DNA of 64,000 nucleotides, taken from the sequence record NC_027399.1; one strand, given 5' to 3'. How positions within the stretch are numbered: position 1 is the first letter of the stretch; each line of letters begins with the position of its first letter. Below are positions 1,218 to 55,543 of this stretch, piece by piece. Under the pieces are notes generated by a model. It was given only the letters and a program-made list of their open reading frames with translations. It was not told the DNA's origin and searched no databases. A program made the position numbers and the translations under genes.

Positions 1218-1227
1218 GGTACCACAT

Positions 1228-37976: not shown

Positions 37977-37980
37977 TTAA

Positions 37981-38026
37981 AAAGACTCCCCGTAAAACTC
38001 GATCAAACGGATTCTACGGGGAGTAT
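37981..38026 (+). terminator. Hairpin closing the left gene block
   Basis: ACTCCCCGTA / TACGGGGAGT inverted repeat; no T-run. Confidence 0.55.
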
Positions 38027-38454
38027 ACTATATTGGACGATATGGTCATTATAGTAGACAATTTAATGGATATAGGTGATTCAGTACTGATAATAATGAA
38101 TATAAATGAATAAGAATGATTCTGAATGATTAAGTACTATTAAGAATGATTAAGTACTATTCAGTACTGATATGCCACTAAGTCCGTTTATAAAGTCGCA
38201 CCCAGTGGGCTACATTTGTAACTATTCAGTACTGAATAGTTCAATTCATCAACTATTTCAAATCTAATTACCCCATTAACTAAATCCCCAAATTATATAT
38301 TAACAAAAATCTGAATAGCATGTCAAGAAAAATCTGGATTACCAACGAGAAAAAATCTGGATTTTAAAAATTTTGAAATGTCGTTTATAGTTCAGGAAAA
38401 AAATGAAATTATAACAAGAAAATTGTTGACACGTATATGATGCCATTATATAAT

Positions 38455-38945
38455 GTAATCCTCAAGACGAGAGAATGTTCTCTCACAGAAAATGCGAAGA
38501 AGCCGAGTTTATCTGTCCCTGCGTGAGTGGGCTAACATTTGAATAGGACAATACGTGGATGAATGAAAAAGGTTCAAAGGGAAGTATTTGATTCCCTGTA
38601 GTATAGTTAATGAGTTAGTACTGATATAGTTTTAATCATTGAGTAGTACTACTGTCGCAAAGGGAAACCTTTGGCTTCCATGGGGAGTGATGACAGAAGG
38701 GCATTATCCTCCATATAGAGTTACTGCGAATAACTCCGTAAGTTGGGTTGTGGCAAACCTCCTAAAATAGTGAATCTACAGTACTACTGATTGGTAGTAC
38801 TGCTTTTAATTCAAAGTGTTTCTTTCCATAGAGAAAAGGTGCATGTAACTTGAACATGTGAACTACGGGAACAGTACTGAACAATTCCAGTACTGATTCC
38901 TCTCCAAATTTTGGATACAATAATGCTAGGCTTCAGTTAGTACTG
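38455..38945 (+). ncRNA. Long structured non-coding transcript of unknown family
   Basis: TTGACA(38426) promoter with TATAAT; no ORF; many hairpins (GAGAGAA/TTCTCTC, CTGTC..GACAG, GAGTTA/TAACTC, CAGTACTAC/GTAGTACTG). Confidence 0.55.
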
Positions 38946-38947
38946 AG

Positions 38948-39066
38948 TGAGAATGATAATGATTCTCATTTGAATTGGATGAGAACGATTCTCATTTACT
39001 ATTGCAAATGATAATAGATTGCATTTACGAATGGTTCTCATTCGCAGATGATAATGATTCTTATTC
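38948..39066. promoter_or_regulatory. Tandem array of five Fur-box-like sites
   Basis: 7-1-7 inverted repeats TGATAAT-G-ATTCTCA, TGAGAAC-G-ATTCTCA, TGATAATAGATTGCA, TACGAAT-G-GTTCTCA, TGATAAT-G-ATTCTTA. Confidence 0.8.
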
Positions 39067-39198
39067 AAAATTGATTTTTCCGATTTTTTCCATTAGTCCC
39101 CCTTCAGCGTAGGGTTAATTTTTCCCCTGCCGAATCAGTTATATATTTTCAAAATCTGGATTAATCATATCAGTACTAACCCAGATAAACAATACCCT

Positions 39199-39213
39199 TT
39201 TACAAATCTTTAC
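39199..39213 (-). promoter_or_regulatory. CpxR-type box
   Basis: TTTACAAATCTTTAC = GTAAA-N5-GTAAA on minus strand. Confidence 0.55.
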
Positions 39214-39227
39214 AAAAAGATTCTAAA

Positions 39228-39257
39228 TGCGAATACAAATGATAATGATTCTCATTT
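39228..39257. promoter_or_regulatory. Extended Fur box
   Basis: TGCGAATACAAATGATAATGATTCTCATTT. Confidence 0.8.
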
Positions 39258-39345
39258 ACAGTACTGAATACTTTTTCCCACGCCCTGGCGTCTCCGGTTA
39301 CTCCCGTCTATATAAACATTATACAGTACTGAAATATTAAGTCAA
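39240..39345 (-). ncRNA. Gene-less promoter element, divergent member of the CCC..GGGTG family
   Basis: TTGACT-16-TATAAT on minus strand; GACGCCAGGGCGTGGG core; runs into Fur box. Confidence 0.5.
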
Positions 39346-39377
39346 TACTATTTTTCAAAAAGATTAAAATAAAATAC

Positions 39378-39484
39378 TTGCAATCATTGTATTATTATAT
39401 TATAATGTTTACAGTACTGAGAAAGTTCTTTTGCCCGCTAGGGTGCGGGGGAGTATGCGTTAAATGAGAATGATAATCATTTAC
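39378..39484 (+). ncRNA. Gene-less promoter element (CCC..GGGTG family) ending in Fur box
   Basis: TTGCAA-17-TATAAT; GCCCGCTAGGGTGCGGGGGAGTAT; GAGAATGATAATCATTTAC (16/19 to Fur consensus). Confidence 0.6.
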
Positions 39485-39489
39485 AGTAC

Positions 39490-39584
39490 TGGACGGATTT
39501 TCCCACCCTCGGGGGTCTCTTTTTGTCTATGTAGTAATTATACAGTACTGGAATACTATATCAAGTCTCTTTACAAATCTTTAC
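39490..39584 (-). ncRNA. Gene-less promoter element convergent on the same Fur box
   Basis: CpxR-type box 39570..39584, TTGATA-16-TATAAT, CCCCCGAGGGTGGGA. Confidence 0.55.
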
Positions 39585-39678
39585 AATTCACCCGGGTAGA
39601 TTTATCTTTACTGTAAAAGTACTTGCATAATTCTTTCAGTACTGCTATTATATATTCATACCAAACAGGAGAACTACC

Positions 39679-39831
39679 ATGAAATACGCGTACTCTTATT
39701 TTATTGTAAACGGTGAACGTTTGACCATCGGCCAGGCTGCTGTAAAACATGAAATCATTTGCGATGATCTGGCAAAGATGCTACCAGGTGAAACGCAAGA
39801 GTTTTACAAAGGCTTCAGAAAGTCATTGTAA
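39679..39831 (+). CDS. Small early hypothetical protein (not in track)
   Basis: Own promoter, AGGAG SD. Confidence 0.7.
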   Translation: MKYAYSYFIVNGERLTIGQAAVKHEIICDDLAKMLPGETQEFYKGFRKSL

Positions 39832-39913
39832 CACGTTGTGAAGATTGATCCAGTATTAGGGGTAGGAATACCCCTAAAACGTCCTATAACGCATTATAAG
39901 AGGTTTTTATAAT

Positions 39914-40141
39914 ATGGCTATAGAAGTTAACGCTGGGGATATAAAGGCGGCTGTACTGCGTACCCTGAAAGCATACGGCAGAAAGCTGAATGATCGAAAC
40001 GTTCCCTATTATTTCCTTGCTGCTACTCATAAAATGGCAATCGCTGAGGCTCGCGGGTGGCTGAATGATCGCAGTACTGTAAAGAGTACCAGAACAAGAA
40101 ACGCAATTGAGCGATGGATAAAAGAATTAAATCATTTCTAA
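39914..40141 (+). CDS. Hypothetical protein
   Basis: GAGG SD, host-like codons. Confidence 0.75.
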   Translation: MAIEVNAGDIKAAVLRTLKAYGRKLNDRNVPYYFLAATHKMAIAEARGWLNDRSTVKSTRTRNAIERWIKELNHF

Positions 40142-40214
40142 TAGTTCAGTAAAGGGAATCAGTACTGATTCCCTGTTTAGTACTGAAATTATAAGGGGAG
40201 TTAATTAATTCCCC

Positions 40215-40345
40215 TTTACAAATCTTTACAAAAGAATTGTTGACATAGTATCCCAGTACTGGTATTATGTATTCATAGACAGAACAAGTCTTTGGCCCAC
40301 AGGGTGCGGAGGAGTATCTATTAAATGAGAATGATAATCATTTAC
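40215..40345 (+). ncRNA. Gene-less promoter element (CCC..GGGTG family) ending in Fur box
   Basis: CpxR-type box 40215..40229; TTGACA-17-TATTAT; AGAC-AGAACAA-GTCT hairpin; GCCCACAGGGTGCGGAGGAGTATCTAT; Fur box 40327..40345. Confidence 0.65.
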
Positions 40346-40349
40346 AGTA

Positions 40350-40452
40350 CTGAATATATTTCCGCACCCTTTTGGGCTTTTCGATTCCTCTCTACTTGCT
40401 AATAAGTATATCATAATCATTACTGAATGCAATGGTCTTTACAAATCTTTAC
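40350..40452 (-). ncRNA. Convergent gene-less promoter element
   Basis: CpxR-type box 40438..40452; TTGCAT-16-TATACT; GCCCAAAAGGGTGCGGA. Confidence 0.55.
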
Positions 40453-40549
40453 AAAAGAAAATAATTATAAAAAGTACTGAAAAAGTACTTGACGTAATAA
40501 TGTAGTACTGGCATAATGAGTACATACCAAACAGAACGGAGTAACTAAA

Positions 40550-40837: not shown

Positions 40838-40956
40838 AAAGTTTTAAAGAGTACTTGACAACATAATTCAGTACTGTATAATGTATTGCATAGAAAGGAG
40901 ATTCCAGAATAATGGAATCTCCGATAAAACAAACTATCAGTGAAGGAGTAATTGCC

Positions 40957-42376: not shown

Positions 42377-42462
42377 GTATTTGACAATTCGATCCAGTAC
42401 TGTATAATGTATTACACCAAAGGGGATACATAGTGTATCCCTGATATAAAGGAGTAGCGACT

Positions 42463-43289: not shown

Positions 43290-43400
43290 TAATAGATACA
43301 CTACGGCACCCTATGGGTCAGTGCCTTGTGTCCGGCTTATGTGGTTATTATGCCAGTACTGCGAACATAAGTCAATAGATGATTTGTAAAGAAGTGTAAA
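43290..43400 (-). ncRNA. Gene-less promoter element (CCC..GGGTG family)
   Basis: GTAAA-N5-GTAAA 43386..43400; TTGACT-17-CATAAT; GCC-GGACACAA-GGC; GACCCATAGGGTGCCGTAGTGTATCTAT. Confidence 0.65.
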
Positions 43401-43567
43401 TGCACAGGAAGCGTTTTAAGGCGTTAATCTGTTGCTGGTGGCTGATAGTACAGAGAAGTGTTTTAGATTGATTGTAGGCCGTTGTAGGCGTTTATAGATA
43501 GTAAAGTACTGATAATGTTTAATGATCCTGGTATGTGCAAATTATTTTAATTTTTTTCGTATTGGGT

Positions 43568-43950
43568 ATTGACGGATTATGTCAGTACTGGCATAATGTA
43601 TCACATAGAGCGACGGGCAAGACAAGTAGTCAACCTGTAAGACATACGAAAACCAGGTGACGTTGCACTGATTCAGTACTGAATAATACATAACATCTAA
43701 ATGTTGACAGTACTGAAAAATGTAGTATAATGATTCACAGAAAGAAGCAATCCAGTAAGCATGGATTAGTGATAAACGTAGGCCGGAATCACGAAAAACT
43801 TTCAAGGAAATACCCTTGTATAAAAAGGGAAGCGTTAAGCGTAGAACGTAAACGCGAAAATCCTAGCCTTGAACTGAAAAAGTAAACAAGGCAATTACAG
43901 AAAAAAGATTTAAAAAAGTAGTTGACAAGTACTAACGAGAATGAGATAAT
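43568..43950 (+). promoter_or_regulatory. Tandem strong promoters upstream of the H-NS-like gene
   Basis: TTGACG/CATAAT, TTGCAC/AATAAT, TTGACA/TATAAT, TTGACA/GATAAT, each containing AGTACT. Confidence 0.7.
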
Positions 43951-44003
43951 CTCTCTCGTTGAAACAAACAAACAATCTTAATCAAAACTTAAAGGTGAAT
44001 AAA

Positions 44004-44504
44004 ATGGCTAAACTGAATTCTGTTGTTGTTGCTCTGATCGCTGGTGATATCGCTGCTCTGAATGCTTCTTTCGCGTCGGTATCGATGGAAGATATGAAAA
44101 CTGTTCGTAACAACTTTAACGATTTTTACTCTAAATTCAAAGCTGCAAATGAAGCGGCGGAAGCGGCTGCAAAAGAGCGTAAAGCACAGATCGAAACCGA
44201 AACGAAAGAACTGGTAGACGCCCTGGTAACTGCTGGCCTGGATCTGGAAATGGCCGCCGAAGTCGCCAGCCAGAAAATGGCGGTGAAATATCCCGAACTG
44301 GCTCCGAAGTCGGGAACTGGTAAAACCTGGTCGTTTGAAACCGTATTCGTTAACGTTGACGGTGAAAAACTGGAAATTGGCACCAAAGGCAACAAAGGCA
44401 GTATGAAAGCACTGGCGGCGGCACGCGAAGCAATTGCCGCTGGCAAATACAAAGATCGTGCTGAATGGATCGCCGCTCACGCCTGGACTGAAACCGAAGC
44501 GTAA
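44004..44504 (+). CDS. H-NS/MvaT-like nucleoid-associated protein (putative)
   Basis: Ala/Glu-rich coiled coil ending ALVTAGLD (H-NS MLIADGID); KY...GTGKTWS (H-NS KY...GETKTWTG); GEKLEIGTKGN (MvaT GEVIETKGGN); highly expressed codon bias; AAGGTG SD. Confidence 0.55.
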   Translation: MAKLNSVVVALIAGDIAALNASFASVSMEDMKTVRNNFNDFYSKFKAANEAAEAAAKERKAQIETETKELVDALVTAGLDLEMAAEVASQKMAVKYPELAPKSGTGKTWSFETVFVNVDGEKLEIGTKGNKGSMKALAAAREAIAAGKYKDRAEWIAAHAWTETEA

Positions 44505-44525
44505 TAATTCAGTACTGTAATAATT

Positions 44526-44550
44526 AGCCTCCTGTAATTAGGAGGCTTTT
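44526..44550 (+). terminator. Intrinsic terminator
   Basis: AGCCTCCT-GTAATT-AGGAGGCT-TTT. Confidence 0.85.
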
Positions 44551-44583
44551 TATTTTGTTCAAAAAAATATTTTAATTTATTTT

Positions 44584-44740
44584 TTGAACGGACTTAAAAA
44601 ATCGGATATAATAATAAAGGGTGTTAATTACAGAGACCCCCATAGTGTTCGCTACGCTCACATAATGATCTTACTCGTTGCACTCGTAAGATCATTATCC
44701 AATCGGCCTTCGGCGATTTCTTTTTGATTTCCTACGGAAA
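44584..44740. other. Promoter followed by cluster of GNA-triloop hairpins
   Basis: TTGAAC-17-TATAAT; 13-bp perfect stem ATAATGATCTTAC/GTAAGATCATTAT; minus-strand GCGTAGC, GCCGAAGGC, TCCGTAGGA. Confidence 0.6.
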
Positions 44741-45111
44741 CCAAACGAAACCACCAGCAAAGGCAGATCCCATTATTTGATTTAGTTAGTACTGCAATGA
44801 ATTAGTTTAATCGCACTACAAAGCAATCAATCCCTTTTGTAATAGCTCATAGAACGCAATAAGACGCGTTTAAATGACTTCCCTATGTAATGCCATTCCT
44901 TTTTAATAAGTCCTCTTAAAACGCGTTACAGTTCGTTATACGGCGTTTAATAATACTCATCATTTCTTTTTCAAAAAGTACTTGCATTAATGATCCAGTA
45001 CTGCAATAATGTACTCACTGAAACGCAGTAAGTAAATGCAAATAAGTACTTGACAAAGTGTTGTAGTACTGGCATAATGAATACATCAAAACGATTAAGG
45101 AGAAACACCAA

Positions 45112-45585
45112 ATGTTAAAACTTCATAAAGTACTTGATAACGCAGTTGTAACCGACTTTTTCCTGTCTCTTAACAACGAACCTAAAACAGCAAAAGAAAT
45201 TGTTTTGAGTGGTTACATTGCCAGCAAGTCAGAGATCGCACATTTGGAAAGTGCTTTCAAGTCCGGCGATGCATTGTACCGAAAAATGCAAAATACCATC
45301 GAAGATTTGCAATATATCAATTTACGTGATATTGTAGACAATAAATTGGATATTTCAGAAGAAGCACGCGAAAACCTGGTAAGTAAATTATGTTACCGCT
45401 GCCGAACTGCAAAATGGAATCGCATTCGTAGTATTATTACTTACGATTTAAGTAAGATCGATTCTAAATCAATTCTTGAACGTATGTTATTAAATTTGCA
45501 AAGCAATGAATGGTTTTATACTGCTGCCCAATCTCATAGCGAAGAAATTGCATATATTCGTGATTATGTAATTTACAGCAAGTAA
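45112..45585 (+). CDS. Early hypothetical protein
   Basis: Two tandem promoters, AAGGAG SD. Confidence 0.85.
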   Translation: MLKLHKVLDNAVVTDFFLSLNNEPKTAKEIVLSGYIASKSEIAHLESAFKSGDALYRKMQNTIEDLQYINLRDIVDNKLDISEEARENLVSKLCYRCRTAKWNRIRSIITYDLSKIDSKSILERMLLNLQSNEWFYTAAQSHSEEIAYIRDYVIYSK

Positions 45586-45658
45586 TTAATAATTGATTAG
45601 CCATCATTAAAGCTGGTGGCTAATAGAATATTAATAACCTGTTAGGAGAATAATCTTT

Positions 45659-45928
45659 ATGAAAGGTATTAGTACTTTAATTGATAAAAACACTCATGTA
45701 AGACGTTCAATGATTGCCGTATCACTGGCTAAAGTTGTTGCAAGTGGTTATCTGGTTTTTGTTGTAGATGGTAAATTGCAAGAGCGTTCAATTGCATTTA
45801 GTACTAAAGAAAATTGCCGTTATATTGTATACAAGAAAGAAGCATACAAGATAGATTTACCAGCGAAACCGATCTCAGGCGGTTACAATGTTGAAAGCCT
45901 TTATGAAAGGCCACCGTATACTGCGTAG
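45659..45928 (+). CDS. Early hypothetical protein
   Basis: AGGAG SD. Confidence 0.75.
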   Translation: MKGISTLIDKNTHVRRSMIAVSLAKVVASGYLVFVVDGKLQERSIAFSTKENCRYIVYKKEAYKIDLPAKPISGGYNVESLYERPPYTA

Positions 45929-46182
45929 AATCGATTTTGAGCGGCTTTAATGAAATATAGGGTATCAGTACTGATACCCGTTTAAAACAGTGTAGGAGTG
46001 ATTCTGTGAAGCGTGAACAAGCTTTATTGACGCCTGAAGAGGCAAGACGCTATGAAATGTTTTCAAACCAGGAAACGATCAAAGCGGCACAATATAACCC
46101 GGTTGCTTGTACAGTACAAAGAAAGAATTTTGTACTAAATGAAGTAGAAAGTATTATCAAATCAAATAAGGAGTAAAACGCT

Positions 46183-46455
46183 ATGCAAAATAACCGTCCA
46201 ATGATCCGCAACATGCTTTTCGTATTCCAGAAAAAAGTTAATGTAACTTCGGTAAATGGTGAACGTAAATTAAATGCAGCTTTCGCCAAATATACCCAAA
46301 GTAAAAACATCCATTACTTTTATCTTACTCTGAATGAGTTTAATGATCTGGTAAAAGAAATGTTTGTCAGTACTGAAATTGTTGCACCTGTAAGCACTGA
46401 TATCATTCTAAAAGAATGGGAAAGTTTTTACAAAAGTTCTGTTGTAATCGCTTGA
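46183..46455 (+). CDS. Early hypothetical protein
   Basis: AAGGAG SD. Confidence 0.8.
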   Translation: MQNNRPMIRNMLFVFQKKVNVTSVNGERKLNAAFAKYTQSKNIHYFYLTLNEFNDLVKEMFVSTEIVAPVSTDIILKEWESFYKSSVVIA

Positions 46456-46509
46456 CAACATAATCCAGTACTGGCATAATAACTACATAGACCACAAAGG
46501 AGAAACATA

Positions 46510-46689
46510 ATGGAAACTGTAATTGCTACTACCAAAATCAATGGACTGGATAATGAAGTTTCATTGATCCATGACGGTAACGAATATGTTGTGTCATATG
46601 GTATCTATAAAACCTATCATGACACTATCAATGAAGCTTTTGAGGATTATATGAAAGCAATTGAAATTGCTTATGATGATTATCGTTAA
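46510..46689 (+). CDS. Small early protein (not in track)
   Basis: Promoter plus AAGGAG SD; METVIATTKING... Confidence 0.7.
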   Translation: METVIATTKINGLDNEVSLIHDGNEYVVSYGIYKTYHDTINEAFEDYMKAIEIAYDDYR

Positions 46690-46772
46690 AAGTACTTGCT
46701 TTAATCATTCAGTACTGTATAATGTATTACATCAAAGGGAATGAATGATTCATTCCCACATAACCAGGAGTA

Positions 46773-47132
46773 ATGACTATGTTTGATAAAGTTTTATTTT
46801 CTGATAACACTTCTGAAACCGAGATCCCGGAAGCGGTAAAAGCTTTTGCTCAATTAGTTGCCCAGCGTCAATCTGATAATTACGACGGGCCTTATTCTTT
46901 CCTTACTGAGATTAGTAAAGGCAAAAAGTTTATTAAACTTATTCGCCGCGAGAAGTGGAAAGATAACGGACAATTAACAGGCGGATCGGTATTTACCTTT
47001 ATTGATCCCGATGGTAACATTTACAAATCAGCGACGGCTAAAGCACCAGCTAAAGGTATTCGCGGAAATGTTAACATCAACGGCGGCAATGATGCAATCG
47101 GACGTGATGGTTATATTCGTTACTTTCGTTAA
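46773..47132 (+). CDS. Early hypothetical protein
   Basis: Cassette with AGGAG; FID.DGNIYKSA..KAPAKGIRGN motif. Confidence 0.85.
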   Translation: MTMFDKVLFSDNTSETEIPEAVKAFAQLVAQRQSDNYDGPYSFLTEISKGKKFIKLIRREKWKDNGQLTGGSVFTFIDPDGNIYKSATAKAPAKGIRGNVNINGGNDAIGRDGYIRYFR

Positions 47133-47246
47133 TTGACAAATCTTTACAAATCGGGGTTGACTTCGGTCGCCCCTTTTGTTATTATATATTCATACCACAG
47201 AGCAAGTGGTTTAGCCCACAGGGTGCCGAGATGTATCTATAGTTTA
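47133..47246 (+). ncRNA. Gene-less promoter element (CCC..GGGTG family)
   Basis: TTGACAAATCTTTAC; TTGACT-17-TATTAT; ACCAC-AGAGCAA-GTGGT; GCCCACAGGGTGCCGAGATGTATCTATAGTTTA. Confidence 0.7.
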
Positions 47247-47342
47247 ATAATTTGAAGTACTGAAAAATAATTATAAAAAGTACTTGTATTTGTGATTCAG
47301 TACTGCTATTATATATTCATACCAATTAAGGAGATTATCCAA

Positions 47343-47501
47343 ATGAATACACAATATGTGCCGGTGATGAATATCACTATAGGAAATGGAAAAGGTATGC
47401 ATCGATTCAGTACTACAAAGAGTTATACTCAGCGTACATTAGAATCGTGTGCAATTACTAAATGGCAAATCAAACATTACTTCACTACGGACAAGAAATA
47501 A
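47343..47501 (+). CDS. Small early protein
   Basis: AAGGAG SD. Confidence 0.65.
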   Translation: MNTQYVPVMNITIGNGKGMHRFSTTKSYTQRTLESCAITKWQIKHYFTTDKK

Positions 47502-47613
47502 TGATTGTAAAAGTATTGACAACGATAATTCAGTACTGTATCATAACTGGTGTAGCGTTCGTGTTAGCAGTTGCTATAGTGTTTAGTACTGTAATTGTAT
47601 TGGGGAATATATT

Positions 47614-47919
47614 ATGATTAAAAATATTGAATCATTTGATAAAGCATATCTTTATACCAGTACTTTTCGGAATAGCGATGGCGTACCGGTTGAATTTAAA
47701 AGCGTAGTATTGATCCGCCCAGGGTTCGATATTATTCACATCTGGAATTCATGGAATCAGGCCGCCGGCAATCGCTATACTATTGATAAAGAAATTTCAA
47801 TAGAAGAAGCGTTAAAACTTCCAACATTGCCGGAACGTTTATCCCTGGCTAGTCGCGTGGAACTGGTAGGCGATACCGCACAATATATCACGCATGAGTA
47901 TGAATTTAAGTACTTATAA
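47614..47919 (+). CDS. Early hypothetical protein
   Basis: GGGG SD. Confidence 0.75.
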   Translation: MIKNIESFDKAYLYTSTFRNSDGVPVEFKSVVLIRPGFDIIHIWNSWNQAAGNRYTIDKEISIEEALKLPTLPERLSLASRVELVGDTAQYITHEYEFKYL

Positions 47920-48004
47920 GTGTTGACAACATAATTCAGTACTGTATAATGTATTACATCAAAGGGGTACATAGTGTATCCCTGAATTAACAGGAGTAAC
48001 CCAT

Positions 48005-48253
48005 ATGTCTAGTATCGTTATCAATGAAACCTTATTATCTGTTACTTATGACAATGACAGTGTTTTTCCGGGTAAAGATTATGGGGACGAAATTCCCGTA
48101 AAAGTTGAACTCGATCAGAGTGTCGGTAATTCCGATGATATTAAACGCACTATGGTAGTTAAAATCGGTCATATTACTTTATTGCCCGGTGATATTGATT
48201 ATATCAAAAGCATGATTGATCGTGCAAATATCATCGCCAATACTTTTAAATAA
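48005..48253 (+). CDS. Early hypothetical protein
   Basis: Promoter-stem-loop-AGGAG. Confidence 0.8.
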   Translation: MSSIVINETLLSVTYDNDSVFPGKDYGDEIPVKVELDQSVGNSDDIKRTMVVKIGHITLLPGDIDYIKSMIDRANIIANTFK

Positions 48254-48346
48254 GTACTTGACAACTGATTTCAGTACTGTATAATGTATTACATAGAAAA
48301 GAGATTCCAGTACTGGAATCTCTAAGATAACCCCAGGAGATTAAAA

Positions 48347-48535
48347 ATGGCAGTAGTATACGGTTATATCAGCAAATATGATTTGACTTTCCGGGAAGTC
48401 GGCACTGAATTAGGTGCAAAGAATGCAGCAACGCGAAACGGCTCGACCCGTGTGGGATATCGCAGTAATATTAATAACATGTATATTGAAACGCATATCC
48501 GCAACGATAAAAAGGGTAAATGGGAAAAAGTGTAA
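48347..48535 (+). CDS. Early hypothetical protein
   Basis: Promoter-stem-loop-AGGAG. Confidence 0.8.
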   Translation: MAVVYGYISKYDLTFREVGTELGAKNAATRNGSTRVGYRSNINNMYIETHIRNDKKGKWEKV

Positions 48536-48545
48536 TCTAATTTCA

Positions 48546-48658
48546 TTTACAAATCTTTACAAAACCAGTACTTGATTTAATTATTGAGTACTGGTATTAT
48601 ATATTCATTGGCAGATAAGCCGCAGCCCACAGGGTGGGGAAGTGTATCTATATGATTT
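48546..48658 (+). ncRNA. Gene-less promoter element (CCC..GGGTG family)
   Basis: CpxR-type box 48546..48560; TTGATT-17-TATTAT; GGC-AGATAA-GCC; GCCCACAGGGTGGGGAAGTGTATCTAT. Confidence 0.7.
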
Positions 48659-48775
48659 AAGTACTGATTTGTTTTTTTTATTTCAAAATAACGCTTGCAT
48701 TACTTTTGGGTTAGTGTATAATGTTTTATATCGAGAGGGGAATTGTTTTCCCCTCCACATTAAGGAAATGAAATT

Positions 48776-48958
48776 ATGTCTATCATCTTAACTGTTCGTC
48801 AATCAAACGCCCTGGCAGCACTTAACAAATCTCTGCAAGAAGCGAGCGATTGCGGGATGTTTGATGTAGTTGATGCTACACCGTCGATCATTAACGCTTT
48901 CTGTGATGAAATGGCTTACTGTCAGGAGCAGGATGATAAGACAAAAGAAATAAAATAA
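48776..48958 (+). CDS. Early hypothetical protein
   Basis: Promoter-stem-loop-AAGGA. Confidence 0.75.
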   Translation: MSIILTVRQSNALAALNKSLQEASDCGMFDVVDATPSIINAFCDEMAYCQEQDDKTKEIK

Positions 48959-48984
48959 GTACTGAAAAGTTTTCAAATAAGGGG

Positions 48985-49070
48985 TTGACTTCGGTCGGCC
49001 CTTTTGCTATTATATATTCATTGGCAGATAAGCCGCAGCCCACAGGGTGCCGAGGTGTATCTATAGTTTA
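48985..49070 (+). ncRNA. Gene-less promoter element (CCC..GGGTG family)
   Basis: TTGACT-17-TATTAT; same 5' hairpin as 48.6 kb copy; GCCCACAGGGTGCCGAGGTGTATCTATAGTTTA. Confidence 0.7.
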
Positions 49071-49338
49071 TTGAATTGAAGTACAGAAAAATATTTCTTG
49101 CATAATTCATTTCTTATGATATAATAGTAATCACATAAATTAATTGGAGTGAACAAAAATGTTATTAGATTGGCTCAATACTTTATCCCCTGCTGCTGGC
49201 CGTCGCTGGGCTATCGGTTCGTCGGTTGCCATCGTTGTAGGCGTCATTGTACTTTTAGTGATGATTTTCTAAAAAGTACTTGCTTTAATGATCCAGTACT
49301 GTATAATGTACTTATACCAAATAACAGGAGTAAAACCG

Positions 49339-49695
49339 ATGAAAGATGTAACTTTACCAGTAGTTCAAACTAACTTTGAAAACCAATTCCTGGCCGAAGT
49401 GTTCAAGATTGATAATGGCGTTGTATCAATCAATTACGGTTTCAATAGCGGCGGTTATGAAAAATTCATTTATTTCGTTACTGCCGATGGTGGATGCCTG
49501 GCAATTGATACGGTACTGAATGAATTCAGTAAAGTAGATTTTAATGATGATAATGATCCTCAGTGGTATATCGTCGGTTATGACGTGAACTATGAAGATG
49601 AAGATCTTTATGATGATCATACTAATCAAAAAATTGAATCAGCTTGGGGTGATATTGAGGACGATTATCAGTCAGTCCCCGAGGATTTTGAATAA
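49339..49695 (+). CDS. Acidic early hypothetical protein
   Basis: AGGAG SD. Confidence 0.85.
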   Translation: MKDVTLPVVQTNFENQFLAEVFKIDNGVVSINYGFNSGGYEKFIYFVTADGGCLAIDTVLNEFSKVDFNDDNDPQWYIVGYDVNYEDEDLYDDHTNQKIESAWGDIEDDYQSVPEDFE

Positions 49696-49725
49696 AAAAA
49701 CACTGGCATATACAGGGGAATAAAA

Positions 49726-49881
49726 ATGATCATCGTACTATCAGAGAAAGAAAAGAAATTAGTTCTTTCAGTACTGAAAGAATATCCCAGAAATATGCGG
49801 GAGCCGTTTGAAACAAATAGTGAATTCGAAGAGCATTTAAACGATATCGATTTATTGATATCCAAGATCGAATCACAATAG
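49726..49881 (+). CDS. Small protein, MILS.EER family (not in track)
   Basis: AGGGG SD; MIIVLSEKEKKLVLSVL. Confidence 0.65.
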   Translation: MIIVLSEKEKKLVLSVLKEYPRNMREPFETNSEFEEHLNDIDLLISKIESQ

Positions 49882-50041
49882 TGATGTACTGTAAAACGTC
49901 CTGTAATCGATTATGGGACGTTTTAAGGAATAGCACTATGATTTATTCAGTACAGTGGAAAAAACGCTTGTAAATTGATTCCAGTACTGTATAATGCTTT
50001 ACATGGAAAAATTATTCTCCACATTATTAGGAATAAAGAAT

Positions 50042-50269
50042 ATGTTTTATCTTGGAACTGTTAAAGAAAATTCGAATGTAATTGAGGCGTCATTGATTTG
50101 TACTAATAATGAAGTCGCTGGCTATGATTTTGCAAAAGAGCGATTCATGAAATATTACACTGGTGATAATTCAGTGTCATTCGATTTTGAACGTATCGGT
50201 GATGGTGTTACAATTATGAAATTTGAAGATCTCCCTGAAATCGATTTTGATTTTGTCGTTACACTGTAA
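50042..50269 (+). CDS. Early hypothetical protein
   Basis: AGGA SD. Confidence 0.75.
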   Translation: MFYLGTVKENSNVIEASLICTNNEVAGYDFAKERFMKYYTGDNSVSFDFERIGDGVTIMKFEDLPEIDFDFVVTL

Positions 50270-50367
50270 AAAAGTACTTGCATAATTCTTTCAGTACTGT
50301 ATACTGTACTTATACCAAACAAAAGCAAATGGAATCAGTACTGATTCCCTGTAAAGGAGATAGACCA

Positions 50368-50619
50368 ATGTCAGATCGTATCACTCGCAAAATGGTAGCA
50401 GATAAAGTTGCTGGGCTGAATCTTGCTATTGACCGTCGTGGATTACCTGAAAAATATCAGGTAGTACTGGAAGATGGTAAATTCAATATTGAATTACAGC
50501 CGTCTCATGTTTATACTAATCCAAAAGTGATACAAAAGAATTTGAGTACACGAGAAGCATATTTTTATCTGAAAGGTATGTTTCAAATTCTTCTCGACAA
50601 TGTACCACATAAAGATTAA
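50368..50619 (+). CDS. Early hypothetical protein
   Basis: AAGGAG SD; MSDRITRKMV... Confidence 0.8.
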   Translation: MSDRITRKMVADKVAGLNLAIDRRGLPEKYQVVLEDGKFNIELQPSHVYTNPKVIQKNLSTREAYFYLKGMFQILLDNVPHKD

Positions 50620-50621
50620 AG

Positions 50622-50653
50622 AAAAAGGGGAGACAACAAGTCTCCCTTTTTTT
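50622..50653. terminator. Bidirectional intrinsic terminator
   Basis: AAAAAGGGGAGAC-AACAA-GTCTCCC-TTTTTTT. Confidence 0.85.
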
Positions 50654-50669
50654 GTATTCAGTACTAAAT

Positions 50670-50755
50670 TATATAGATACATTTATGCACCCTGTGGGTT
50701 AGTAGCTTGTTCTGCTTTATGTAGTAATTATATGATAAAGCTGGTGGCTTGTCAA
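50670..50755 (-). ncRNA. Gene-less promoter element (CCC..GGGTG family)
   Basis: TTGACA-17-TATAAT on minus; AGC-AGAACAA-GCT; AACCCACAGGGTGCATAAATGTATCTAT. Confidence 0.7.
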
Positions 50756-50848
50756 CACTTATTTTAAAATAAAAAAAATACTGAATAGTACTTGCAAAAA
50801 GTATTCAGTACTGTATAATGTTTGTATTGAGATTAAGGAGTACTTACT

Positions 50849-51388
50849 ATGTTAATCAAAATGTATCACGGTTCTAATAATTTTGATCACCGCCGGGGAT
50901 ATCTGGGCGGAAAGCCAGGTAATTTTCATATGGGCTTTGGACTCTATCTAACTAACTCTTATCGCTGGGCTGATAATTATGGGCGACGTCATTATGAGTT
51001 AGATTTAGATATTTGTAGTACTGGTGCCGCACATAATGTATGGATTCCTACTAAACACTTTATGGAATTCATAAGAGTATATTGCACCAAAAAGTTTTAT
51101 ACAATGTGCTGTAAAGAATTTAAAGACCGTGAATCGTTGAATGTAGAACGCGTTGAATTGCTTATTATCAATATGGAAAGGCACGTTACGAAAATCGCTA
51201 AACCATTTGCTGAATTCGTCGCTGCCTGGGGTTGCACGCATAGCATTGAAATATCCGGTAACTATGGTGGTGTTTGCGTGCGGCTTTATGATTTCAGTAC
51301 TATAAAGAATTGTATCATAAGCCAGGAAACGCAGGATTTTTATTATCCAGATGAATTGACAAGATATCCTCAAAAAAACTTGTATTAA
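50849..51388 (+). CDS. ADP-ribosyltransferase-fold protein (putative, H-Y class)
   Basis: MYHGS...GFGLYLT.S...A..YG signature. Confidence 0.55.
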   Translation: MLIKMYHGSNNFDHRRGYLGGKPGNFHMGFGLYLTNSYRWADNYGRRHYELDLDICSTGAAHNVWIPTKHFMEFIRVYCTKKFYTMCCKEFKDRESLNVERVELLIINMERHVTKIAKPFAEFVAAWGCTHSIEISGNYGGVCVRLYDFSTIKNCIISQETQDFYYPDELTRYPQKNLY

Positions 51389-51651
51389 TGATTCAGTACT
51401 GATATAATGTATTAAATTAACAGGAGGAATTATCTTAAATGAATAAACGTCAATTGATGATTGATGCATCTCGTTTCCGTTCAAAAGAAGAAAAGAAAAG
51501 TTGCATTAAATGGGTTTTGTCAACTTTCATTATTGGATTACTTATTGTTGCTTTTGTTTATAGTTAGTACTTGACAATATAATCCAGTACTGTATAATGT
51601 TTATCAAAGGGAATGAATTATTCATTCCCGATTAATCAAAGGAGTTTTGCC

Positions 51652-51876
51652 ATGATCTATATTATCAAAGTATCCCCGACCGTAGGAAAATCAGAAGTTG
51701 TAGCTGTTATCACTTCCCTGGAAGCGAAAGATCTTCATACCCCGTTTAATGTATGGGTGGAGGATAATTTCGGACAATTCAGTACTGCTGAATATATCGA
51801 ACAATTCGCCGTCCCGGATACTGGTAAAATCAAAGTGGATCGTATCCTGGATTTTGATAACAGTAATTACTTTTAA
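51652..51876 (+). CDS. Early hypothetical protein
   Basis: Promoter-stem-loop-AAGGAG. Confidence 0.75.
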   Translation: MIYIIKVSPTVGKSEVVAVITSLEAKDLHTPFNVWVEDNFGQFSTAEYIEQFAVPDTGKIKVDRILDFDNSNYF

Positions 51877-52174
51877 AAACGTTTGACAACTGATTTCAGT
51901 ACTGTATAATGTTTATCAAAGGGAATGAATTATTCATTCCCGATTAATCAAAGGGGTTTATCATGAAAGAGTATATCTTTGAAGTAACTTTCACCTTTGG
52001 CCCGCACCAACTGATCCGGTCTTCTGGCTACAACCGCGAACAAGCATTCAGCAACCTTCGCCGTATGTACCCCAATGTCGTGACCTGGGTCAAGTGTGAA
52101 GAAGCATAAAATAATTAGTCAGTACTATTGACAACGCGTGATAGTACTGCTATAATTATTTTAACTTATACGGA

Positions 52175-52426
52175 ATGGAGTTAAAACAAATGTTCAGTGT
52201 CAGCAAACAAGGCGACAAATTTCTGGTTCAATACCATCATTTTGATCTGGTATACACTCAGCCAGATTGTGTATTCAGTACTCAGGAAGGTGCTGAAAAG
52301 CACAAAAAAGCCTTGATCGAAAATAGCAACAGTGGTACATTAGATTTCATCCAACAGTACTGGAATGAATCTAAGCTGGTGGACGGTTATTCCAACACAG
52401 TTTATTATGTAGGTATCACTGATTAA
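52175..52426 (+). CDS. Early hypothetical protein
   Basis: Follows promoter; start may be ATG 52190. Confidence 0.75.
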   Translation: MELKQMFSVSKQGDKFLVQYHHFDLVYTQPDCVFSTQEGAEKHKKALIENSNSGTLDFIQQYWNESKLVDGYSNTVYYVGITD

Positions 52427-52713
52427 TCGGGAGTACTGTTAATGTATATGCCAATTATCATACCGTTAGCAGTACTGTTAATCGCCGCCGTTATCTGCGA
52501 ACAATATCATTTGTTAGGAATGTAAACTATGATTCAATGTGAATTGTCAGTACTGATCACGCTGTTCTATATGTTGGGGCAAAAGAAACAAGATATTTCT
52601 GGTGATAATGCATTATTGTATCAATCATTAGACCAATGGCAACGATCTGAATTAAGCAATGCATGGGCGAAAGGTTACAACGATAGTACTGCAAAATAAT
52701 TTAAAAAAAGGGG

Positions 52714-52801
52714 TTGACTTACGCCAGCCCTTTTGTTATCATTAGTACATAGCAAGAACAATGCTCAAGCCCACAGGGTGCCGAAGTGTATCTATAGTTT
52801 A
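52714..52801 (+). ncRNA. Gene-less promoter element (CCC..GGGTG family)
   Basis: TTGACT-17-TATCAT; AGCA-AGAACAA-TGCT; GCCCACAGGGTGCCGAAGTGTATCTATAGTTTA. Confidence 0.7.
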
Positions 52802-52886
52802 TGTTGGTCTGAATCATTAATTTTTCTTGACAATTGGTTTAGTACTGGATATAATAGCCGCCATTGAATACAGGAGGATTTTAAAA

Positions 52887-53153
52887 ATGGCCTATCATAC
52901 ACCACATAGACACTTCATTGATAAACGCGGTATGGCTTTTAAAGCAATGAGTGACAATCGTAACACACAAATGTACTTTAAAGATATGACATTAGAAGAA
53001 GCAATTGAAGCCGTAAGGAATGATCGTAAGCTTTCCAAGAAAGTTGCATCAGTACTTAATGCTTTTTGGTTTGAACGTACTACCAACAAAGAATACAAAG
53101 AAAAGATGATTGCACTTGGTAAAGTAGTAAGAGAAGAAAAATTATATCTTTAA
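52887..53153 (+). CDS. Early hypothetical protein
   Basis: AGGAGG SD. Confidence 0.8.
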   Translation: MAYHTPHRHFIDKRGMAFKAMSDNRNTQMYFKDMTLEEAIEAVRNDRKLSKKVASVLNAFWFERTTNKEYKEKMIALGKVVREEKLYL

Positions 53154-53435
53154 GTACTTGACTATGTGATTCAGTACTGTATACTGTACTTATACCAAAC
53201 AAAAGCAAAGGGAATCAGTACTGATTCCCTGTAAAGGAGATAGACCAAATGAAACAAGCAAAATTTAATTCAGAAATTAAAGCAGCAAAAGCACACAAAG
53301 TACAGTTAGCAGTACTGGCTATCGTATCAATCTTTTTGCTGTGCAACATCGGCTAAAATAATTATCACAGTACTATTGACAACCAACGATAGTACTGGTA
53401 TAATTAGTTTACCAAATCAAAAAGGAGTAACTAAA

Positions 53436-53711
53436 ATGCGGATTAAACTTACCAGTGATGAAATTCATTCAGTACTTACTACCAATATGCAGGACTGGAA
53501 AAAGTACGCTGATATCGAAGAAGTCCAGGAACTCAATGATGATTTGAGTGTAGATGAAATTATTACTATTTGCTCATCTCAATTCTTTGATGATATCAAT
53601 GATGAAGAGCAAGATGTATTTGATATCATGGAAAAACATTTTATTGCGTATGATGTTTTCCCGTATACTCGCCAGGCTTATATTCTTATTCACAACATTT
53701 ATAACAAATAA
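53436..53711 (+). CDS. Acidic early hypothetical protein
   Basis: AAGGAG SD. Confidence 0.8.
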   Translation: MRIKLTSDEIHSVLTTNMQDWKKYADIEEVQELNDDLSVDEIITICSSQFFDDINDEEQDVFDIMEKHFIAYDVFPYTRQAYILIHNIYNK

Positions 53712-53723
53712 GGAATAATAATC

Positions 53724-54089
53724 ATGGAAAAAGAATTTAAAATCAAATACAATATCAGTACTGATTGCGGTTTCGAAGTACCAGAAGAAGATCAAGAACG
53801 TCTTAATGATGTTATTATGATTGACATTTCAAATAAAATCATTCAAGGCTACCGTGAAGGCGAATTGTGTGAATCGTTGATGGATCAATTCAATGAAGTG
53901 GAAACGTTTTATCGTGGCTGGTGGAGTATCGAAGAAGTTCACAAAGTACACGAATACCGTGTATTCTGGATTAACGGCGTTAATGATATCGAAGATATCA
54001 TTGTAAAAGAAAGTAGTGAATCCGCCGCCATTCAGTACTTTAAAGATCACTACCCCAACAAACGTTATCACCATTTAGAAAAAATTTAA
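53724..54089 (+). CDS. Early hypothetical protein
   Basis: AAGGA SD. Confidence 0.8.
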   Translation: MEKEFKIKYNISTDCGFEVPEEDQERLNDVIMIDISNKIIQGYREGELCESLMDQFNEVETFYRGWWSIEEVHKVHEYRVFWINGVNDIEDIIVKESSESAAIQYFKDHYPNKRYHHLEKI

Positions 54090-54176
54090 AAAGTACTTGA
54101 CACCTAATACCAGTACTGATATATTAATACGCATAGGGGCAAACAACTTGCCCCACTAAACAAAAGGAACTACCAA

Positions 54177-54533
54177 ATGATTACTAAATTCTATTCTTCC
54201 CGCGAAAAAGCTCGGATCGTAGCACGTGAAGAAGGCGAAACCTTCAAAGATATGGGTAAAGATTCCCCTGCTGGTCAACGCTGGGCAGTACTGTTCCGCG
54301 AGGTCAAAGACCTGGTAGAAAACGCTAAAGCGGTTGAAATGAACGTACCCACCAAAGAAGATAAAGATCTGACTGATGCCCTCGCCGCTGCATTCTCCGC
54401 GATGGATAAAGCCGCAGCGGTAGTACTGAAAGTACCGGAATTTGTAACCCGCAAAGTGCATTCAGTACTGCAAAATAAATTCAACGGTAAACAGGTTCAA
54501 GTGTTTACTAAACGTAAAATTCCGGTCATGTAA
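54177..54533 (+). CDS. Highly expressed early hypothetical protein
   Basis: Cassette with AAGGA; strong host-like codon bias; YSSREKAR...GQRWAV. Confidence 0.85.
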   Translation: MITKFYSSREKARIVAREEGETFKDMGKDSPAGQRWAVLFREVKDLVENAKAVEMNVPTKEDKDLTDALAAAFSAMDKAAAVVLKVPEFVTRKVHSVLQNKFNGKQVQVFTKRKIPVM

Positions 54534-54641
54534 GACCTGATTATTACAGTACTAACAAAGGGGCTTCAAAGCCCCTTTAAACGTCCTGTAAGCCATTCTA
54601 AGAGGTTTTACATGAAAAAGGTACAACTACACAAAGGAGTA

Positions 54642-54860
54642 ATGAAAGTTCATTATAATGCCCCGCAACGCATTATAGATAGAGCCATTGAACTAGCCAA
54701 TCAATATCTAGCTGGTGGATTAACTCCCAGGAAGTTAAGCAACGGGAAGTTATATGTAATCAACGTTGATACTAATAATCGTATAGTAATCAAAGGTGAA
54801 AGCATATCACTGTATGAACATCAACAGTATAACAAGAAAGTAAAAAATATTAGTAGATAA
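54642..54860 (+). CDS. Small basic protein, possibly RelE/ParE-like fold
   Basis: AAGGAG SD; RKL...I.V..NNRIV...HQQYN pattern. Confidence 0.45.
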   Translation: MKVHYNAPQRIIDRAIELANQYLAGGLTPRKLSNGKLYVINVDTNNRIVIKGESISLYEHQQYNKKVKNISR

Positions 54861-54939
54861 GTGTTGACAACTGATTTCAGTACTACCATAATGTATACAT
54901 ACAAGGCAATACCGCCTAATAACATAGGAGTAACTGAAA

Positions 54940-55362
54940 ATGAAAAAATCAACTAAAATTGTCTTAGGTGTATTTGTTGTTCCGGCAGTCGCCTTTTTTT
55001 CTTGTGCTATGATTTTTGGTGATGCTTCTCGGGTTGCCGCAAAAATCGAAAAAGAAAAACAAGTCCAGGAACAAGTTAAGAAAGAAGAAAAACCAAATTA
55101 TAACACTGTATGGGAAGCAATTTGCCATACCAGTACAGGTAAACGAATTTCCATCCTTACAGCAATGAATAATGGAAAATCAATCGTCGGAAACGAATAC
55201 ATGGAAGTGACTTCCAGTACTGGTAAAGAATTTGTAATGACGAACTATAATAACAATAACGTTGCAATTGTTACACAGGATTTTAAAGGTAATGCAGTAC
55301 TTGAATATCATATGCAATATGAAGTAATTTTTGCAAAATGCACATTTGAATGGGGTGCATAA
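54940..55362 (+). CDS. Membrane-anchored early hypothetical protein
   Basis: N-terminal hydrophobic helix; AGGAG SD. Confidence 0.8.
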   Translation: MKKSTKIVLGVFVVPAVAFFSCAMIFGDASRVAAKIEKEKQVQEQVKKEEKPNYNTVWEAICHTSTGKRISILTAMNNGKSIVGNEYMEVTSSTGKEFVMTNYNNNNVAIVTQDFKGNAVLEYHMQYEVIFAKCTFEWGA

Positions 55363-55389
55363 AAATAAACATAATAAACAAAAAAGGGG

Positions 55390-55472: not shown

Positions 55473-55543
55473 TTAAAGAATTTTAGTACTTGACAACGTA
55501 GTACAGCAGTACTAAAATATCTACATACAAAGGAGATTACCAA

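Follow-up and report, generated by a model that had tools for sequence, protein, structure and literature searches.

Head-to-head promoter-leader modules enclosing Fur-like sequences in the terminal repeat of the Klebsiella jumbo phage K64-1

We analysed a 64,000-nt stretch of sequence record NC_027399.1 (the window; coordinates refer to it unless otherwise stated), in which an initial annotation had noted a duplicated cassette with two promoters facing a box for the host repressor Fur. The 2.2 kb around the cassettes are 100% identical to Klebsiella phage K64-1, a 346.6-kb Alcyoneusvirus and Rak2-like jumbo phage (K64-1 record position = window position + 186000), and 93–97% identical to the phages RaK2, Muenster, RCIP0023, KP13-7, and phiKp_21. 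In Muenster, whose ends were set by PhageTerm, the homologous stretch corresponds to positions 641–3089 of a 20,030-bp direct terminal repeat (DTR; 1–20030). Muenster position 1 aligns to window position 38181, which puts the cassettes 1.2–2.3 kb in from the left physical end of the genome. The DTR (38181 to ~58210, ~20 kb) has a G+C content of 0.36, compared to 0.30–0.31 in its surroundings, and is dense in consensus sigma-70 promoters ahead of small genes without assigned function. The interval 37977–39678 is devoid of credible genes. In RaK2 and RCIP0023, nothing is annotated in this interval or in any of the three cassettes described below, and Muenster annotates a single 50-aa open reading frame (ORF; CPT_Muenster_001), which starts inside the Fur box of copy 1. 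An iron-related function was sought among the neighbouring genes and none was found, all of them being of unknown function.

Two full cassettes, at 39360–39590 (copy 1) and 40215–40454 (copy 2), and a partial third, at 39199–39345 (copy 3), were identified (Table 1); the promoters, starts, ends, and folds given here are all predictions. The two full copies share an 80-nt direct repeat (39430–39509 and 40291–40370) with 83% identity, and the Fur box together with the right core occurs for a third time at 39237–39294. All of the parts that the initial annotation had described were found at or near the positions that it had given, well above chance. Both full copies carry a central Fur-like box, matching 16 of the 19 consensus positions, next to CAGTACTG, and the TTTAC-N5-TTTAC boxes outside are exact copies of TTTACAAATCTTTACAA, beginning at 39199, 39570, 40215, and 40438. 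The head-to-head arrangement of the promoters was observed in both copies, which are predicted to give overlapping transcripts of opposite sense, but the pair in copy 2 is asymmetric, since its weak leftward promoter matches only 8 of 12 consensus positions and was not picked up by the promoter scan.

In copy 2, the arms GCCCACAGGGTGCGGA (40295–40310) and TCCGCACCCTTTTGGGC (40361–40377) pair with one mismatch and one bulge, and the predicted rightward RNA folds into a 5' hairpin and a long interrupted hairpin (-38.7 kcal/mol, z = -5.5). The 16-bp interrupted stem of the latter is directly followed by UUUU (40378–40381), as in an intrinsic terminator, the efficiency of which is uncertain because the loop is unusually long (50 nt). 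The rightward RNA is thereby predicted to end in a terminator-like manner about 105 nt from its start. The hairpin that bounds copy 2 on the left (40195–40214) is likely to be a bidirectional terminator, and copy 2 is flanked by direct repeats, the 23 nt at 40437–40459 being identical to 40214–40236. The arms of copy 1 pair poorly, and its fold is no better than chance often yields (z about -2); on the plus strand, its right core forms a terminator-like site (39500–39515), followed by a T run (39520–39524).

The cores also occur away from the cassettes. The 16-mer core of copy 2 recurs, with 0–4 mismatches, about 20 nt 3' of other strong promoters across the DTR, on both strands. In the window and in loci from relatives, the pattern CCC-N3–4-GGGTG was observed in 76 unique instances, all of which are 3' of promoters; in 69% of them a sigma-70 match of at least 10/12 has its -10 element ending 22–29 nt upstream, compared to 2.8% for random positions. 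A covariance model built from 19 instances gave nine strong matches in the window (E = 1e-8 to 5e-16), all inside the DTR. The rightward unit of copy 2 is a canonical member (58.4 bits, E = 1e-14), and the eight other canonical leaders span 43290–57358. The remaining arms of copies 1 and 2, as well as that of copy 3, are degenerate, with 11–19 bits or scores below threshold, compared to 37–64 bits for the canonical copies; the leftward leader of copy 2 was matched at 40348–40398 (18.9 bits, E = 0.0016), and the left core of copy 1 weakly at 39412–39462 (E = 0.23).

The same model gave 54 matches in 162 kb of DTR sequence from 14 sources, representing at least five phage lineages. This set comprised Alcyoneusvirus, Asteriusvirus (121Q and vB_Ec-M-J), Cronobacter phage GAP32, Kae01/Munch, and two more jumbo phage contigs from IMG/VR, and the hosts of the leader-bearing Rak2-like phages are Klebsiella, Escherichia coli, Cronobacter, and Salmonella. 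Throughout the K64-1 genome, both the core and the TTTAC box are restricted to the DTR, where TTTACAAATCTTTACAA also precedes solitary members, at the same spacing, at 47133, 48546, and 43384 (minus strand). These comparisons indicate that the cassettes have no private hairpin arms, their cores being inverted copies of a promoter-proximal leader element that is widespread. The inverted repeat that had been described for copy 2 can close a long hairpin around the Fur box, but it is made of family leader copies and is not a dedicated repeat.

No published description of the leader family was found. Rfam gave no match in the window at the gathering score, and nothing relevant up to E = 5 in 38000–58500. 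When 185,579 genomes, one for each bacterial species, were scanned for the exact pattern, 19 matches were obtained in unrelated taxa and none in enterobacteria, in line with our estimate of about 35 by chance, and a host origin of the leader was rejected on this ground. Downstream of the solitary rightward leaders, a second promoter follows after 50–70 nt, and then a gene. The two solitary leftward leaders (50720–50671 and 43340–43290) are followed, about 60 nt on, by strong bidirectional terminators, suggesting that they yield only ~100-nt non-coding RNAs. Composite terminator-promoters, in which the -35 element (TTGACT) lies in the loop of a GGGG...CCCC hairpin and the T run leads into the -10 element, were seen at 47150–47185, 49000–49035, 52715–52750, 55395–55430, and 57285–57320.

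The leader, about 55 nt long, begins some 3 nt past the predicted start (cAU...) and appears to be a structured RNA. Its elements are, in order, a 5' hairpin, CCC-N3–4-GGGUGC, a 6-nt loop, and a YRYCY strand, with AGUACUG about 10 nt further on. The 5' hairpin, located between the start and the core, has 3–5 pairs and GA-rich loops (AGAACAA, GAGAAA, AGAUAA, and GCGAAA). With the position, the loop size, and a minimum of three Watson-Crick pairs fixed beforehand, it was found in 39 of 61 distinct leaders, compared to 9 on average and 17 at most in 1000 shuffles. The 39 hairpin-forming leaders use 20 different stem sequences, and, in a subset of the same geometry, all four pairs are changed on both sides in a compensatory manner. 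Since this subset was picked for hairpin formation, its 100% pairing is not independent evidence, whereas the diversity of the stems is. An unconstrained search for the best hairpin anywhere in the 5' leader did not separate real from shuffled sequences, whereas the position-constrained test did. The covariance model holds the second helix only, because the 5' hairpin could not be registered by MAFFT/RNAalifold, owing to the variable lengths of the stem and the linker.

For this second helix, GGGUG and YRYCY are fully paired in 52 of 65 leaders at one fixed offset, compared to none at neighbouring offsets and 8 in shuffles, and 94% of the individual pairs are formed, compared to 23–68% when the partner strand is shifted. 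The invariant CCC/GGG mini-hairpin is a competitor of this helix. Complementarity to, or mimicry of, E. coli 16S, 23S, and 5S rRNA and tRNA-Glu does not exceed 8 nt, which is no more than in shuffles. A CsrA sponge was rejected, since GGA occurs in the 6-nt loop of only about half of the copies, and inspection by eye revealed no resemblance to a CRISPR repeat.

Matches to a 19-bp Fur consensus with up to three mismatches were found four times in the window, all at 38949–40345, compared to 0.12 expected, and six times in the entire 346.6-kb genome, so that the four in the window, within 1.4 kb, are part of these six. When up to five mismatches were allowed, 38100–40500 contained eight matches, compared to 0.27 in composition-preserving block shuffles; these overlap and represent about six Fur-like sites in 1.5 kb, within the first 2.3 kb of the DTR. 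Matches to GATAATGATAATCATTATC, which is equivalent to two overlapping 7-1-7 repeats, reach 16/19 at 38949, 39241, 39466, and 40327, and each cassette centre holds two overlapping 7-1-7 matches of 13/15. RaK2, Muenster, RCIP0023, and KP13-7 share the cluster outside the cassettes (Table 1), and Kae01/Munch has an analogous one. A 6-bp offset separates overlapping sites (38949/38955 and 39235/39241 in the window; 3002/3008 in RaK2), which is also the offset in footprinted E. coli Fur clusters (PMC2189734). In RaK2, Muenster, RCIP0023, KP13-7, and wastewater variants, the copy 2 box carries 6-nt AATGAT and 5-nt ATTAG insertions (40319–40330), which lengthen the hexamer array and do not destroy it.

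Some Fur-like boxes are located at about +25 to +75 relative to the predicted starts, and others are remote from promoters. The promoter overlap usual for Fur boxes was not observed, with only a 9/12 promoter-like match overlapping the copy 2 box; in E. coli, 39 of 42 strong Fur clusters overlap a promoter, and clusters located downstream of promoters, rather than over them, give weak repression (PMC2189734). A literature search for Fur sites in lytic phages yielded nothing specific.

When copies 1 and 2 of K64-1, an extra copy in KP13-7, and the cassettes of Kae01, vB_Ec-M-J, and GAP32 were aligned, they proved to be homologous from promoter to promoter. The cassettes of the E. coli phage vB_Ec-M-J and the Cronobacter phage GAP32 lack an 18-nt block that bears the Fur-like sequence. 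These results indicate that Fur cannot be what makes the cassette work, and that it is a lineage-specific add-on. A Fur-like centre was also present in convergent pairs of two IMG/VR phages, and pairs lacking it were present in a 378-kb E. coli phage. The core loops often differ within a pair (ACA/AAAA in copy 2, GCTA/CCGA in copy 1, and ATA/ACC in the E. coli phage), indicating that the complementarity of the pairs is no better than family resemblance.

The phage phiKp_21 (2100–2300; window 39434–40376) carries a fusion cassette, the left half of which comes from cassette 1 and the right half from cassette 2, indicating that the cassettes recombine. The two small genes between the cassettes (39679–40141) are absent from this phage. 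Wastewater contigs exhibited mosaic joints at the promoter/leader borders, which are the borders of the modules. Public RNA runs provided wastewater contigs only, carrying no strand or end information, with a coverage that resembles the DNA of related phages.

Table 1. Features of the cassettes and of the terminal repeat (window coordinates; a dot denotes no strand)
Feature	Position	Strand	Basis
Approximate left DTR boundary	38181	.	Muenster position 1 aligns there; physical genome end in Muenster
Fur-like hexamer-array cluster, outside the cassettes and any convergent pair	38944–39075	.	Matches (≤5 mismatches) at 38949, 38955, 38981, 39050
Cassette 3 TTTACAAATCTTTACAA box, left edge	39199–39215	+	Exact match
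Cassette 3 centre: Fur-like array 39235–39259 abutting CAGTACTG 39259–39266	39235–39266	.	Consensus and motif scans
Cassette 3 leftward unit: TTGACT-16-TATAAT (39345–39318), 11/12; degenerate core 39291–39277	39277–39345	-	Promoter scan and alignment
Cassette 1 rightward promoter TTGCAA-17-TATAAT (-35 39378–39383, -10 39401–39406)	39378–39406	+	Scan, 10/12
Cassette 1 rightward unit: CAGTACTG at predicted start; degenerate core GCCCGCTAGGGTGCGGGGG 39433–39451	39378–39451	+	Sequence
Cassette 1 centre: Fur-like box 39466–39484 and CAGTACTG 39484–39491	39466–39491	.	Consensus and motif scans
Cassette 1 leftward unit: TTGATA-16-TATAAT (39564–39537), 11/12; core 39515–39502	39502–39564	-	Promoter scan
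Cassette 1 TTTACAAATCTTTACAA box, right edge	39570–39586	+	Exact match
GGGGA...TCCCC hairpin between A/T runs, left bound of cassette 2	40195–40214	.	Read from sequence; palindrome
Cassette 2 TTTACAAATCTTTACAA box, about -60 to -44 of rightward promoter	40215–40231	+	Exact match
Cassette 2 rightward promoter TTGACA-17-TATTAT, upstream TG (-35 40240–40245, -10 40263–40268)	40240–40268	+	Scan, 11/12
Cassette 2 rightward unit: start ~40275, 5' hairpin 40277–40291, core 40295–40310, partner GTATCT 40314–40319	40240–40319	+	Predicted
Cassette 2 centre: Fur-like box 40327–40345 and CAGTACTG 40345–40352	40327–40352	.	Consensus and motif scans
Cassette 2 right arm TCCGCACCCTTTTGGGC 40361–40377 and TTTT 40378–40381	40361–40381	+	Fold
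Cassette 2 leftward unit: -35 40432–40427 TTGCAT, -10 40410–40405 TATACT, degenerate leader	40361–40432	-	Sequence reading
Cassette 2 TTTACAAATCTTTACAA box, right edge	40438–40454	+	Exact match
Other canonical leaders in DTR	47193, 48604, 49017, 52748, 55419, 57308	+	Covariance model
Other canonical leaders in DTR	50720–50671, 43340–43290	-	Covariance model

The motif CAGTACTG, which had been noted at the cassette centres, is not specific to the cassette, with 107 copies in the window compared to 0.6 expected. Its hexamer AGTACT is over-represented about 10-fold outside the DTR and 22-fold inside (e.g. 40846–40882, 42381–42408, and 47937–47975), and the K64-1 genome contains 940 copies of AGTACT and 242 of CAGTACTG. 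An early promoter pattern, AAAGTAC-TTGACA-N9-CAGTACTG-TATAAT, places two AGTACT 21 bp apart; AGTACT also forms the loop or stem of terminator hairpins and is present within coding regions. It is probably the site of a DNA-binding factor. A LexA box was rejected, as only a half-site resemblance was found.

Several other features of the DTR were observed. The RefSeq annotation of K64-1 lists many 20–50-aa 'hypothetical proteins' (gp400–gp416) on both strands of 37977–39678 and 40142–40549, which looks like over-annotation. At 38426–38812, a 12/12 promoter (38426–38454) precedes about 350 nt free of ORFs and a terminator-like hairpin (38779–38802), with a z of -2.8 for the predicted fold; this is a candidate non-coding RNA that would be the first transcript of the DTR. 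On the minus strand at 38195–38210, 14 nt inside the DTR boundary and nearly at the predicted genome terminus, a core-like GCCCACTGGGTGCGAC lies without a convincing promoter, adjoined by a 22-bp palindrome centred on CAGTACTG (38220–38241). The Chi sequence GCTGGTGG occurs 10 times in the window, compared to 0.34 expected; nine of these are in the DTR, eight on the plus strand (43434–57486) and one on the minus strand (44751), and 9 of the 13 plus-strand Chi sequences of the genome fall in the DTR. Their orientation would suit RecBCD coming in from the right end. The deposited genome has one ambiguous base (n) at about 56886, within promoter-like sequence. A tRNA search gave nothing relevant.

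With slightly better than even confidence, we favour the interpretation that the cassette is a head-to-head pair of a repeated early module of Rak2-like phages, which a Fur-like operator modulates in a lineage-specific manner. The comparisons above establish the anatomy and the leader family, as well as the confinement of this family to the DTR and its presence in several genera of hosts as a conserved element. The module consists of the TTTACAAATCTTTACAA box at the position of an UP element, a strong promoter for the host sigma-70, in which AGTACTG is usually located just 5' of the -10 element, and the ~55-nt structured leader. Upon entry of the DTR, the host RNA polymerase would fire from both facing promoters, generating short non-coding RNAs. 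In copy 2, the strong rightward promoter would give the ~105-nt RNA, ending at the paired inverted cores and UUUU, and the weaker leftward transcript would be antisense to it and should stop at the 40195–40214 hairpin. The central operator, a lineage-specific insert of 18–30 bp, would most likely recruit host Fur-Fe(II) to the entering genome end, and, with iron in plentiful supply, bound Fur would dampen the converging units or keep them apart. Fur would therein modulate the cassette and not make it work, and the modules also behave as recombination joints, like the promoter-early stem-loop (PeSL) cassettes discussed below. A further-reaching version, which we put forward tentatively and consider rather improbable, is that the Fur array, with three boxes between converging leaders, serves the phage to read host iron or to drain Fur in the first minutes of infection, and that the leader is a new class of phage regulatory RNA, common to Rak2-like phages from at least four host genera.

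Several points weigh against the favoured interpretation, in addition to the predicted nature of the promoters, ends, and folds. Fur binding is read from a 16/19 consensus match in AT-rich DNA, and the sites, being placed downstream of promoters, would by analogy with E. coli be in a poorly repressing position. The leader RNA has no function assigned, and solitary family members are thermodynamically unremarkable (z about 0). In the second helix, variation is confined to one side and consists mostly of transitions, and the pairing depends on G-U pairs, which makes this helix strand-specific and plausible, but unproven. Moreover, because three of the four arms of cassettes 1 and 2 and the arm of cassette 3 are degenerate, parts of the cassettes may be decaying duplicates.

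The initial annotation had interpreted the same anatomy as a roadblock switch, in which Fur-Fe at the centre would yield two ~50-nt RNAs and its absence a long hairpin or ~120-bp double-stranded RNA, thereby reporting iron. The converging promoters, the central Fur-like box, and the complementary arms of copy 2 argue for such a switch, as does the retention of the Fur-like centre in Alcyoneusvirus, Kae01/Munch, and the two IMG/VR jumbo phages. However, the E. coli and Cronobacter relatives have the cassette without the box, the arms do not co-vary to keep their pairing, the leftward promoter of copy 2 is weak (8/12), and Fur clusters 3' of promoters repress weakly in E. coli (PMC2189734). Fur-like boxes also cluster at 38949–39075, outside any convergent pair, and no downstream target or effector is visible, the neighbouring genes being without recognisable function. 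The switch would fit the anatomy, which does not require it, and we regard it as unlikely. The clustering of the sites, some of them outside any promoter pair, speaks for a decoy, in which about six sites per DTR, in two DTRs of each of hundreds of replicating genomes, would titrate Fur and thereby relieve the repression of iron uptake and of other genes under Fur control, from which the iron-dependent ribonucleotide reductases of the phage would profit. The Fur titration assay is based on the de-repression of the Fur regulon by multicopy Fur boxes; of the six best sites of the genome, four lie within 1.4 kb, Kae01/Munch has an analogous cluster, and the phage encodes both aerobic and anaerobic ribonucleotide reductases. 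A decoy leaves the exact placement of the boxes at the cassette centres unexplained, and related E. coli phages do without them, and we consider both this reading and the proposed benefit quite unlikely.

The degenerate arms and the partial third copy, the fusion and deletion in phiKp_21, the mosaic joints at module borders in environmental contigs, and the 23-nt identical direct repeats that flank cassette 2 would also be compatible with recombination debris, in which PeSL-like shuffling joints (PMC2839356, PMC4122927) leave head-to-head pairs and partial copies as functionless by-products. Conversely, the head-to-head layout is homologous over its full length in phages that are ~73–78% identical, across four host genera, which argues for selection on the pair itself; we consider debris an improbable account. 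The Fur-box ATG opens ORFs of 25 aa in copy 2, 50 aa at 39464–39616, and 37 aa in copy 3, which might encode small proteins, or one half of a type I toxin-antitoxin-like pair with the opposite transcript as antisense regulator. Such ORFs are annotated in RefSeq, and, in our reading of the sequence, that of copy 2 stays in frame in RaK2 despite its internal 6-nt insertion; however, the KP13-7 copy stops after 10 codons, the C-termini differ among copies, GGAGG lies at least 13 nt from the ATG, only Muenster among RaK2, RCIP0023, and Muenster annotates any of them (CPT_Muenster_001), and the E. coli and Cronobacter cassettes lack the block bearing the ATG, so that we give coding very little credence. 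A transcription-activated origin, in which promoter RNAs form R-loops that prime DNA synthesis as at T4 oriF/oriG or in ColE1, would agree with a module made of a promoter, a G-rich RNA segment, and AT-rich DNA downstream, near a genome end. It is very unlikely in view of the nine or more copies, the absence of a GC-skew turn here, and the leftward solitary members that run straight into terminators; in addition, promoters that converge cause overwinding, and not unwinding, of the DNA between them (twin-domain model).

The closest described system to the module that we favour is the PeSL cassettes of T4-type phages (Arbiol et al. 2010, PMC2839356; Comeau et al. 2014, PMC4122927). Both are repeated intergenic units of ~100 bp in which a strong early promoter of sigma-70-like type is combined with AT-rich upstream sequence and a G/C stem-loop, located among small genes without known function and serving as indel crossover points between close relatives. 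In K64-1, the predicted promoters reach 10–12/12 for most members, G/C stem-loops are provided by GGGG..CCCC around the -35 element at 47150, 49000, 52720, 55400, and 57290, an arrangement that is a described PeSL subclass, as well as by the CCC..GGG and 5' hairpins 3' of the -10 element, and crossover is seen in the phiKp_21 fusion and the environmental-contig joints. Unlike PeSLs, which end in the Shine-Dalgarno sequence and start codon of the downstream gene, the units face each other or a terminator, and in the solitary plus-strand members a second promoter intervenes before the gene. Furthermore, K64-1 is an Alcyoneusvirus and not a T4-type myovirus, the module has a conserved strand-specific leader RNA 3' of the start, which is unreported for PeSLs, units that are head-to-head or oriented against all genes have no gene to serve, and some enclose a Fur-like operator. 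With enterobacterial Fur clusters (iucA, fepA-fes, and fhuF; PMC2189734), the sites share arrays of GATAAT-like hexamers, 16/19 matches, and the 6-bp overlap phasing; they differ in lying between converging promoters or off promoters, in a virulent phage, with no iron gene nearby.

The facing promoters, 110–190 bp apart and predicted to give structured, complementary RNAs of ~100 nt that overlap fully, recall ColE1 RNA I/RNA II, IS10 RNA-OUT/RNA-IN, and lambda OOP. There, one of the two RNAs is an mRNA or a primer whose downstream role is known, whereas neither predicted cassette transcript has a visible target, and no conserved ORF or origin signature was found in the cassettes. The lambda nut boxB and HK022 put sites bear a resemblance only: a short hairpin, variable in its stem and closed by a GA-rich, GNRA-like loop, in the first ~20 nt, with conserved sequence after it. 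No N-like protein was recognised and no boxA-like sequence was noticed, no boxA search having been made, and members that run into terminators or into each other would be unfit for anti-termination. In PA5oct, a distantly related Pseudomonas phage, the DTR forms the early region, from which the host polymerase produces abundant non-coding RNAs (PMC7318152), which resemble the predicted transcripts in coming from a long, early terminal repeat; these RNAs are 236–451 nt long, and a sequence relation to the K64-1 leaders is not demonstrated.

Rak2-like jumbo phages are under development against Klebsiella and E. coli, yet the control of their early genes has hardly been mapped. Promoters go unmentioned in the RaK2 genome paper, and literature searches for promoters and transcriptomes of Alcyoneusvirus, Asteriusvirus, and Kae01 gave nothing specific, nor any strand-specific RNA data for enterobacterial Rak2-like phages. 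The present analysis supplies a concrete early promoter architecture for these phages, a leader RNA motif that is conserved, occurs in more than 50 copies, and lacks an Rfam entry, and a testable link to host iron regulation. If Fur binds, this would be an unusual use or sequestration of a global host repressor by a lytic phage, and if the leader RNA is active itself, it would represent a new family of phage non-coding RNAs. Even in the minimal reading, PeSL-type mobile regulatory cassettes would be extended from T4-type to jumbo phages, and would account for the mosaic gene content of their terminal repeats.

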